A stretch of DNA of 62,982 bases, filler included, from Olpidium bornovanus S191 (lineage: Eukaryota > Fungi > Olpidiomycota): the NCBI GenBank assembly GCA_017911155.1. It is 32 parts of 32 records of this genome, joined end to end, with 100 filler letters (N's around TTAATTAATTAA, not from the genome) between each part and the next. Parts side by side here need not be neighbours in the genome. Positions count along the whole stretch, not along the records: positions 49,928 to 52,452 come from JAEFCI010010202.1; 31 more parts are not named here. One strand, written 5' to 3'. Below are positions 50,970 to 52,452 of the stretch, one piece after another. A program made the translations under genes and the position numbers. How positions within the stretch are numbered: position 1 is the stretch's first letter; each line of letters begins with the position of its first letter. The notes beneath the pieces were generated by a model. It was not told the DNA's origin and did no database searches. It was given only the letters and a program-made list of their open reading frames with translations.

Positions 50970-52452
50970 CGAAGGCGGCGAAAAGGCGGTTCAGCAAAGA
51001 CATGATCGGGAAACCGGCGAACTTCGAGTAAGTTTGAAAACAAGCCGCCCGCGTTCGAAAGCAGCTGAAAACCCCGGCTGCTCTGTGCCCCCCCCCCTTT
51101 CCCCAACCCCCCCCCCCACCACCACCACCACCACCACTCCCCTTCCACCCCCCGTTGTTTTTTATTTTGCGGCAGGTTTCTCAGGAGGCGATCAATTTCG
51201 GTTGAGAAAGTTAGGCACCCGGGCGAAAACGTGCTCGGATAGCAGAATCCCACGGCGGCGACCCCCTCTTCTGCAGTCACCCGATGCTAACGCTTGTTCT
51301 CGCAGGCATCGCGTGCATACGGATACGCGTGAGCAGGCGGAGAGCGCGCTGAAAGATATTTCGAGGGGTTCAACATCAAAGCTGGGTGAGTATGGCACGG
51401 CGCAGCCGGAAAGACTCATTGCGTCGTTCCGCCATTTTACGTAACTTCGAGTGCGGGGAATGCTCAAACACAGCCAATTCTTGACACCTGGGTGAAAAAA
51501 CGTCCGTACCAAATCTGAAGACTTCTCGAAGCTGCTGGGCCGAATTGGATCCGTCCGGCACTCTGCCGCCGAAGCGGATTACGTAACGGGGGAACCTGCG
51601 CGACCGAAGTCGCTTCTTTCCGAGCTGCGAGGCGAACTCCATAATTTTATCCCGGGACGATCTTACAGCAATGGGACGGAAAACAGCTGCGTCCAGCCGA
51701 GCGCGGAAAAGAAACCTGGCTTAGCCCGGTCGACGTCTTTGGGGGACATGATCTCCATCCCGGTGACGGGGGAGGCGGAGCAGATGGACACGTCCTCTCA
51801 GTCGGATGCGCGCGAGAGCGGCCTGCGCGCACACCGGCGGGCGAGGGAGGGCGTGTCGCTGGTGACTAAAGAGAGGTCCGTGGCGGCGAAGATCTACTTT
51901 GAAAACTACTTCGACCGGATGCTCAGCGCGCCGCACACCGGCCGGGCCAAGCGGAGGATGCAGCTCGAGGAAAAGCTGCAGAGCATGGATATACCCGACG
52001 CGGAGAAGCGGGCAATCCGCCAGGAGTGGCTGGGCACCGAGAGCGAGCACATGCGCCGCCTGCGCGAGAAAATCTCCGTGGACTCCTTCGACGTTCTGAG
52101 CACCATTGGCAACGGCGCCTTCGGCGTCGTGAAGCTGGTGCGCGAAAAGGCGACTTCGGAGCTCTTCGCCATGAAGGTCATGCGAAAAGTCGACATGCTC
52201 CGCCGCGGCCAGGAGGGCCACGTCCGCGCGGAAAGAGACCTTCTCTCGAAGGCGTCCGAAAGCGCTACGTGGATCGTGAAGCTCGTCTACTCGTTCCAGG
52301 ATTCAGACAACCTTTACCTTGTCATGGAGTACATGGCGGGCGGAGACCTGCTCAGTCTGCTGATAAAGCGAGACGTTTTTGAAGAGGATTTCGCAAAATT
52401 CTACGCCGCCGAGATGGTCACGTGTATAGAGGAAGCGCACAGGCTAGGGTGA
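50970..52452 (+). CDS. NDR-family AGC kinase with an upstream CRIB-like motif; exons 50970-51027, 51306-51385, 51521-52452 (truncated at the fragment end)
   Basis: NTR: TKERSVAAKIYFENYF...RRMQLEEKL...ESEHMRRLREKISVDSF. Kinase: IGNGAFGVVKLV...FAMKVMRK...GQEGHVRAERD...LYLVMEYMAGGDL. The spliced upstream exons give [21 protein letters not shown], in frame. Confidence 0.92.

Follow-up and report, generated by a model that had tools for sequence, protein, structure and literature searches.

An NDR-family protein kinase gene of the early-diverging fungus Olpidium bornovanus S191 encodes, in one spliced reading frame, a basic region and a CRIB (Cdc42/Rac interactive binding) motif that lie N-terminal to the kinase. 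The gene is found on the plus strand at 49928–52452 (JAEFCI010010202.1; 58% G+C) of the window, by which we mean the whole 62,982-nucleotide stretch of joined genome parts that was analyzed and along which all positions are counted. This locus part corresponds to the 5′ third of an NDR/LATS-family AGC kinase gene. An initial annotation, made from the sequence, had proposed the arrangement; the joints in assembled RNA contigs and the open frame across them now establish that the motif precedes the kinase in a single spliced frame. Taking the evidence as a whole, we consider it probable, if well short of certain, that the product is an NDR kinase with an ancestral basic-CRIB module, which recruits the kinase by docking on Cdc42 or Rac in the GTP-loaded state.

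NDR/LATS kinases, which operate in the Hippo pathway, the morphogenesis Orb6 network (MOR), and the septation initiation and mitotic exit networks (SIN/MEN), and the GTPases Cdc42 and Rac represent two central systems of fungal polarity and cytokinesis. The links known between them are indirect, with Ste20-like kinases upstream and, in fission yeast, Orb6 acting on a guanine nucleotide exchange factor for Cdc42; the functional cross-talk of Orb6 and Cdc42 is well studied. Kinases known to carry CRIBs include the PAKs, ACK, and MRCK and, to our knowledge, neither Cbk1/Orb6/COT-1 nor Dbf2/Sid2 carries one.

Results

The CRIB exons and the kinase are joined in mRNA

RNA evidence consisted of Logan assembled contigs from two runs belonging to different studies, X1 (a contig of 2400 nucleotides at depth 54) and X4 (1949 nucleotides at depth 7), which were aligned to the locus. 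The joints that the initial annotation had predicted, 51027>51306 and 51385>51521, are borne out by the contigs of both studies. The splice signals that it described are also present in the sequence, and the three segments concerned (50970–51027, 51306–51385, and 51521 onward) form a single open frame when joined. The contigs contain the CRIB exons, neither starting near 51739 nor skipping the upstream exons. Two raw-read RNA runs that carry the same species label, X17 and X20, yielded no reads at the locus in a 6% sample.

At least four exons make up the mRNA (Table 1). Because the X1 contig joins an upstream exon at 50705–50845 to 50970, the exon with which the initial annotation began is exon 2. 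Although the acceptor at 50970 implied that upstream coding exons were missing, the RNA shows one small exon that gives only M-Q and one base. Its ATG at 50839, which is the sole ATG within 50594–50845, is in frame and has an A at −3, placing the basic patch and CRIB core at residues 7–27 of the protein, ahead of a linker of ~135 residues, the NDR N-terminal regulatory region, and the kinase N-lobe. Intron 2 interrupts the CRIB core within the Glu22 codon. The reading frame of the long exon 4 stays open from 51496 until the locus part ends. The apparent stop at 52450–52452 is not real: the GT at 52449–52450 is a splice donor, past which the letters of both contigs, in frame after CTAGGGT, encode FIHRDIKPDN, the kinase catalytic loop. 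The locus part ends inside an intron, and the RNA contig extends ~1150 nucleotides further.

The N-terminal module resembles the CRIBs of WASP and PAK4

The CRIB consensus is I-S-x-P-x(2-4)-F-x-H-x-x-H-V-G, and the Olpidium motif matches five of its eight consensus residues with the correct spacing. According to mutational work on WASP, its contacts with Cdc42 comprise a basic triad, Ile-233, Lys-235, Ile-238, Pro-241, Phe-244, His-246, and His-249, and a fragment truncated shortly downstream of the CRIB retains binding at about 32 nM (PMC6166713). All of these contact positions are matched in the module, and Val-250 and Gly-251 are not. Two of the non-consensus residues of the Olpidium motif have precedent in proteins solved with Cdc42, since Gly follows Ile in WASP and N-WASP and Thr follows the second His in PAK4. 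Because only the first 14 of the 59 positions of the Pfam PBD profile (PF00786) match the Olpidium peptide, we classify the element as a CRIB motif, as distinct from a PBD of the PAK type.

A profile of the module, built from an alignment of 36 modules (A1), was compared with 177,635 distinct PDB sequences. It gave 13 matches at E ≤ 10, all of them CRIB regions: PAK4 (8.5e-6), N-WASP (3.6e-5), WASP (3.8e-5), PAK6, further PAK4 constructs, PAK1, and PAK2. Each aligned stretch covers the basic region through the second His. At the level of profile comparison, the module is similar only to bona fide CRIBs among solved proteins. Its language-model neighbors are mostly PBD families, with low scores.

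An AlphaFold model was made for a relative from Podila (P0253, 736 amino acids) with a 128-sequence alignment (predicted template modeling score, pTM, 0.64). In this model the CRIB has a predicted local distance difference test (pLDDT) score below 50 and is followed by a helix at 77–89 (pLDDT about 65), ~90 low-confidence residues, and then the well-modeled regulatory helices and kinase. The prediction suits a disordered linear motif. In the module alignment, the acidic stretch of Olpidium exon 3 is the counterpart of the short helix predicted at 77–89.

The motif is found throughout a fungal kinase family

Among the full-length relatives returned for Podila P0253, about 107 of 114 have the motif N-terminal to the kinase. 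Several of the motif-less exceptions are visibly truncated gene models; P0022 starts at the regulatory region, and its sister P0125 has two copies. Chance is excluded as the source of the spliced motif by the RNA joints together with its presence in these ~107 relatives. The initial annotation had suggested looking for PBD plus NDR architectures in early-diverging fungal proteomes; among database proteins, the motif precedes the kinase in members of Mortierellomycotina (Mortierella, Linnemannia, Podila), Glomeromycotina (Rhizophagus, Diversispora, Ambispora), chytrids (Borealophlyctis, Rhizophlyctis, Entophlyctis, Batrachochytrium salamandrivorans, Dinochytrium, Globomyces, Terramyces), Blastocladiomycota (Sorochytrium, Blastocladiella), all three subphyla of Basidiomycota (Trametes, Marasmius, Rhizoctonia, Ustilago, Sporobolomyces, Austropuccinia), and Taphrinomycotina (Saitoella). 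The relatives are public under names such as "hypothetical" or "kinase-like".

The family consensus, K-[KR]-R-[IF]-S-K-D-M-[IV]-S-x-P-x-x-F-x-H-[LR]-[VI]-H-[AT]-[ES]-[DT]-x-[ED]-Q-A-E-x-x-L-x-x-W, contains six of the eight CRIB consensus residues. Pro and both His are invariant in alignment A1. In a full-length alignment of 128 sequences (A2), these three residues, together with an Ala and a Lys just downstream, are at least 90% conserved, and the columns of the motif that reach this level are among the very few that do so outside the regulatory and kinase regions. PBD matches with E < 0.01 were obtained for 16 of the 36 modules. Some chytrid proteins carry tandem copies of the CRIB-plus-helix module, with three in Batrachochytrium salamandrivorans P0140 and two each in Entophlyctis P0138 and Dinochytrium P0125. 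By virtue of multiple copies, the whole proteins P0138 (33.1 bits) and P0140 (25.2 bits) exceed the PBD cut-off; the relatives P0121 (15.7 bits) and P0128 (13.4 bits) fall below it. The basic-CRIB module is thus a trait of the family, ancestral to a fungus-wide NDR clade.

Two further features of the family were noted. Dinochytrium P0125 has Val at the CRIB Phe position. In the chytrid members P0011, P0122, P0123, P0125, and P0038, a second short motif, R-[SI]-F-K-x-[LM]-[LIM]-x-P-W, lies between the CRIB and the regulatory region, of which the Olpidium protein has a weak echo (DFSKLL, about 51521–51540).

The kinase falls in a fungal NDR/LATS clade without close similarity to Cbk1, Orb6, or Sid2

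The Pfam Pkinase profile matches residues 239–356 (1.3e-21), corresponding to the N-lobe. The NDR assignment of the initial annotation is upheld by the best solved relatives in the PDB, which are yeast Cbk1 (1.4e-40) and human STK38/NDR1 (1.5e-36), followed by ROCK, DMPK, and MRCK. Residues 27–222 of the Cbk1 chain align to query residues 111–309, with the alignment starting in the Cbk1 regulatory region that was solved with Mob. The matching Olpidium region, TKERSVAAKIYFENYF..., which aligns from Cbk1 chain residue 27 onward, directly precedes the kinase domain; its counterpart in the model of Podila P0253 consists of long helices at 179–246.

Apart from the protein's own 234-residue entry, the closest database relatives are ~67% identical and come from Mortierellaceae, Glomeromycotina, and chytrids. 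In alignment A2, the activation-loop Ser (S483) is invariant, the hydrophobic-motif Thr (T694, in GYTFK) is at least 90% conserved, and an activation-segment insert of ~70 residues separates subdomains VII and VIII; these regions lie past the end of the Olpidium locus part.

A 77-row FastTree phylogeny unites the fungal proteins that share the signature Q-E-x-H-[VLI]-R-A-E-R-D in a single clade (support 100), to which neither the animal LATS rows nor those of the NDR/tricornered type belong. In a tree of 61 rows covering the regulatory region and N-lobe, the Olpidium protein takes a tentative position at the base of the chytrid/Blastocladiomycota side. When the model of Podila P0253 was searched against Swiss-Prot, the top structural matches were all NDR/LATS kinases. 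The first was Aspergillus nidulans "cbk1" (P0C1B1, 902 amino acids), and the next were true Cbk1, Orb6, COT-1, LATS, STK38, and Sid2, which are 26–37% identical to P0253. Since the Swiss-Prot entries for Cbk1, Orb6, and Sid2 are not close matches, this clade seems to be without a close member in budding and fission yeast. The separate clade and the distance to these kinases agree with the earlier suggestion, made from the Olpidium signature GQEGHVRAERD, that the gene belongs to a less-studied fungal NDR subfamily and not to Cbk1 or Dbf2.

Pezizomycotina members have no CRIB

All 24 of the 24 Pezizomycotina representatives (P0150, P0172, and P0231 included) have no CRIB. They form a well-supported sub-clade with long N termini and the signature [SC]QEGHLRAERD, which groups with the CRIB-bearing rows in one clade (FastTree support 100). 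We read this as loss of the CRIB on the Pezizomycotina branch. Many Pezizomycotina proteins match the query N-lobe in two stretches in phmmer searches.

The A. nidulans kinome contains one AGC/NDR kinase besides CotA, SidB, and SrrB, namely AN10485 ("An-Stk21"), deletion of which is viable; its Neurospora crassa counterpart is NCU03242 (stk-21) (PMC3591445). NCU03242 is described as the ortholog of Fusarium graminearum PUK1, which is perithecium specific and requires adenosine-to-inosine editing of in-frame stop codons (PMC4817773). With P0C1B1 as the top structural match, the Pezizomycotina branch is probably that of An-Stk21/STK-21/PUK1. The P0C1B1 branch shares its clade and a related signature with the Olpidium kinase but is without a CRIB.

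Layout of the Olpidium gene

The features of the locus are collected in Table 1. The X1 mRNA contig begins in exon 1, plus 40 letters into an A-rich tract. Directly upstream of this first RNA-supported exon, at 50657–50697, an A-run of ~24 is followed by (AAT)4, and it is at this place that the contigs break. Intron 2 contains C-runs and (CCA)7 at 51090–51140. At 52034, both the X1 and the X4 contigs have C and the genome has G (GGC->GCC), changing Gly to Ala in EWLGTES, which may reflect a strain difference or an assembly error.

Further upstream, a separate, unspliced X1 contig of 505 nucleotides covers 50089–50593 at ~1/10 the depth of the mRNA contig, and an open reading frame (ORF) from an ATG at 50347 (50347–50916) reaches the ATG at 50839 in the same frame via a poly-Lys/Asn stretch. 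Together, these might represent either a long 5′ leader of lower abundance or an extended N terminus. As the true start, the ATG at 50347 is disfavored by the ten-fold lower contig depth, the low-complexity sequence, and the lack of a Pfam match. ORFs on the minus strand (e.g., 50558–51280) are without a family match or of low complexity and were treated as chance occurrences in GC-rich DNA.

Table 1. Features of the Olpidium NDR kinase locus, in window positions unless stated otherwise
Feature	Position	Strand	Content and support
Exon 1	50705–50845	+	5′ leader, ATG 50839–50841, codon 2 (MQ and first base of S); X1 contig
Intron 1	50846–50969	+	124 nucleotides, GTGAGC...CACAG; joint 50845>50970, GT..AG, X1 contig
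Exon 2	50970–51027	+	basic region, FSKDM, first half of CRIB core; sequence and RNA contigs
Basic residues K7 R8 R9 (exon 2)	50981–50989	+	
CRIB first half I15-G-K-P18-A-N-F21-E (exon 2)	51005–51027	+	
Intron 2	51028–51305	+	278 nucleotides; GTAAGT donor, GCTAAC branch, CAG acceptor; joint 51027>51306, X1 and X4
Exon 3	51306–51385	+	second half of CRIB core, then family-conserved acidic stretch
CRIB second half H23-R-V-H26-T27 (exon 3)	51307–51321	+	
Intron 3	51386–51520	+	135 nucleotides; GTGAGT donor, AAG acceptor; joint 51384/5>51520/1, GT..AG, X1 and X4
Exon 4	51521–52448	+	linker, NDR N-terminal regulatory region, kinase N-lobe; donor GT 52449–52450
Linker (exon 4)	residues about 49–163		no family match
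NDR N-terminal regulatory region, from TKERSVAAKIYFENYF	51865 onward	+	aligned to Cbk1
Kinase N-lobe with GQEGHVRAERD	from about 52090	+	

Discussion

If an NDR kinase carries a CRIB at its N terminus, how might the two parts work together? Binding of a GTPase by the module is likely, judging from its resemblance to CRIBs that contact Cdc42. On its own, the module would be disordered and, as a short linear motif, would dock on Cdc42 or Rac in the GTP-loaded form. The basic residues would steer docking, and the Ile, Pro, Phe, and two His would form the interface, as in WASP and PAK4. Docking would bring the kinase to membrane sites of active GTPase, at places of polarity or division, where NDR activation could proceed through Mob binding, autophosphorylation of the activation loop, and phosphorylation of the hydrophobic motif by a Ste20-like kinase. 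The tandem copies of chytrid members may raise avidity, and the conserved acidic helix may engage either the GTPase or, by folding back, the kinase. Phosphoregulation through the conserved RR[IF]S that immediately precedes the motif is also possible. Since many Glomeromycotina have Asn there, we give this last possibility little weight.

We also lean toward the view, though with less confidence, that a direct link from Rho GTPases to NDR kinases is ancestral to fungi. In that case, a third NDR/LATS clade, extending from chytrids to mushrooms and smuts, would be a Cdc42/Rac effector by way of its N-terminal basic-CRIB module, which multiplied in chytrids and was lost in Pezizomycotina. The architecture would have gone unnoticed because the family is apparently missing in budding and fission yeast, the motif was lost in the relatives of Aspergillus and Neurospora, and the motif scores just under the Pfam cut-off.

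Several observations weigh against the proposal that this protein is a Cdc42/Rac effector. Three of the eight consensus residues are absent from the Olpidium motif, where Ser is replaced by Gly (as in WASP), Val by Thr (as in PAK4), and Gly by Asp; throughout the family, the VG of the consensus is [AT][ES]. The score with the PBD profile, which the initial annotation had named as a test, is borderline: the 45-residue Olpidium peptide does match (19.1 bits, E 0.0016), but under the curated gathering cut-off of 21.3 bits. No family member matches the PBD past profile position 17, and the β-hairpin and helix, which in PAK and WASP contribute affinity and switch sensing, are replaced by an unrelated acidic helix. 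The RNA support consists of assembled contigs, which show the presence of transcripts with CRIB exons and not their proportion. Finally, a longer N terminus is possible, because of the low-depth contig at 50089–50593 and the same-frame ORF from 50347.

The first of these points would suit a CRIB look-alike that binds a partner other than a Rho GTPase, such as the protein's own regulatory or kinase domain (as a means of autoinhibition), Mob, or a reader of the RRxS site. The absence of VG across the family, an acidic helix that is unlike any PBD, and a PBD match confined to positions 1–17 could all be understood in this way, as could the scores of most members under the Pfam cut-off and the absence of PF00786 from the precomputed Pfam lists of roughly 240 listed relatives. 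The upstream RR[IF]S also resembles a basophilic kinase site. However, the PDB-wide profile matches are CRIBs without exception, down to 8.5e-6, and include the basic region at the same spacing; the matched positions are those through which WASP contacts Cdc42; the Thr in place of Val recurs in the PAK4 CRIB, which has been solved with CDC42; and the probability that six fixed positions would occur with the right spacing by chance is, by a rough estimate, ~2e-7 per residue position. We therefore regard a look-alike as unlikely. The reading of the motif as a CRIB holds up at the level of the family, given its conservation in relatives, its CRIB-only profile matches, and the PBD matches of individual modules.

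Even a genuine CRIB could fall outside the usual kinase coding sequence, if translation began downstream (e.g., near 51739) or if the CRIB exons belonged to a minor isoform or a 5′ leader. That the joints come from assembled contigs, and that the first start codon which an ORF finder reports in the long exon is the TTG at 51739, would fit such an arrangement. It is nonetheless very improbable: the joints are found, all in one frame, in contigs of two studies, the first ATG is in good context, and module and kinase are conserved together in about 107 of 114 relatives, many of which gene callers annotate as one protein. A different possibility is that a true CRIB serves only as a localization tag, of the BORG/CEP or Gic type, and contributes nothing to allosteric regulation of the kinase. 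The motif is short, has none of the parts of the PAK inhibitory switch or the WASP GBD, and is separated from the regulatory region by ~90–135 residues that are of low confidence in the Podila model and have no family match in Olpidium; the two to three tandem copies of chytrids would suit avidity. Conservation of the helix after the motif, where the Ala of QAE is at least 90% conserved, hints instead at a further function. We view a pure localization tag as conceivable but doubtful; it is a variant of the recruitment of an NDR kinase by Cdc42 or Rac that we favor, not a contradiction of it.

Comparison with known systems shows what the Olpidium kinase shares with other GTPase effectors. PAKs, including the group II members PAK4 and PAK6, likewise have a basic region and CRIB before a C-terminal Ser/Thr kinase, and the PAK4 CRIB is nearly identical to the Olpidium motif, down to the Thr after the second His. 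However, PAKs belong to the STE20 group and the Olpidium kinase to AGC/NDR, and we recognized neither the PAK inhibitory switch nor a pseudosubstrate in the Olpidium protein. The "PAK-like architecture" of the initial annotation therefore applies to the order of domains but not to the mode of regulation, as nothing like the GBD of PAK or WASP follows the second His. In WASP and N-WASP, the basic triad and I-[ST]-K-x-D-I-G-x-P-x-x-F-x-H-x-x-H align residue for residue with the module, including Gly for Ser, but these proteins contain WH1, VCA, and an autoinhibitory GBD core, which the Olpidium protein lacks, its effector output being a kinase.

Among AGC kinases, MRCK, ROCK, and DMPK are coupled to Rho-family GTPases, and MRCK carries a CRIB. 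These kinases (MRCK as CDC42BPA/B) are the next-best solved kinase relatives of the Olpidium protein after Cbk1 and STK38. The CRIB of MRCK is C-terminal, after the coiled-coil, C1, PH, and CNH regions, whereas that of Olpidium lies at the extreme N terminus of an NDR kinase. Cbk1/Orb6/COT-1 and Dbf2/Sid2, the two fungal NDR kinases that have been studied, share the NDR build, which comprises the regulatory region, activation-segment insert, activation-loop Ser, and hydrophobic-motif Thr (the latter three seen in the relatives of the Olpidium protein), but Cbk1/Orb6/COT-1 and Sid2 differ in signature and, as noted above, in overall identity. That an NDR/LATS kinase can carry a module for binding a small GTPase has a precedent in the LATS2-like NdrC of Dictyostelium, which has a Ras-binding domain (PMC4120859). 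The NdrC module binds RasB/RasG, belongs to another lineage, and is not a Rho-type CRIB.

A CRIB on an NDR kinase was not recorded in the openly accessible literature that we searched, in source names, or in precomputed Pfam lists. The literature found mentions CRIB only in the contexts of the CRIB-GFP probe, PAK, WASP, and plant RIC proteins. What is new is the combination of CRIB and NDR; CRIB kinases and a Ras-binding domain on a LATS-like kinase were already known.

Motif-level CRIBs of this kind escape standard domain annotation. If our interpretation is correct, the family would offer a case study of how a linear GTPase-binding motif is gained, multiplied, and lost on one kinase family. 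An NDR kinase able to sense Cdc42/Rac-GTP without an intermediary would constitute a new wiring of polarity GTPases to Hippo-like signaling, and this wiring would be present in plant and animal pathogens, among them smuts, rusts, Rhizoctonia, and Batrachochytrium, as well as in mycorrhizal fungi such as Rhizophagus.

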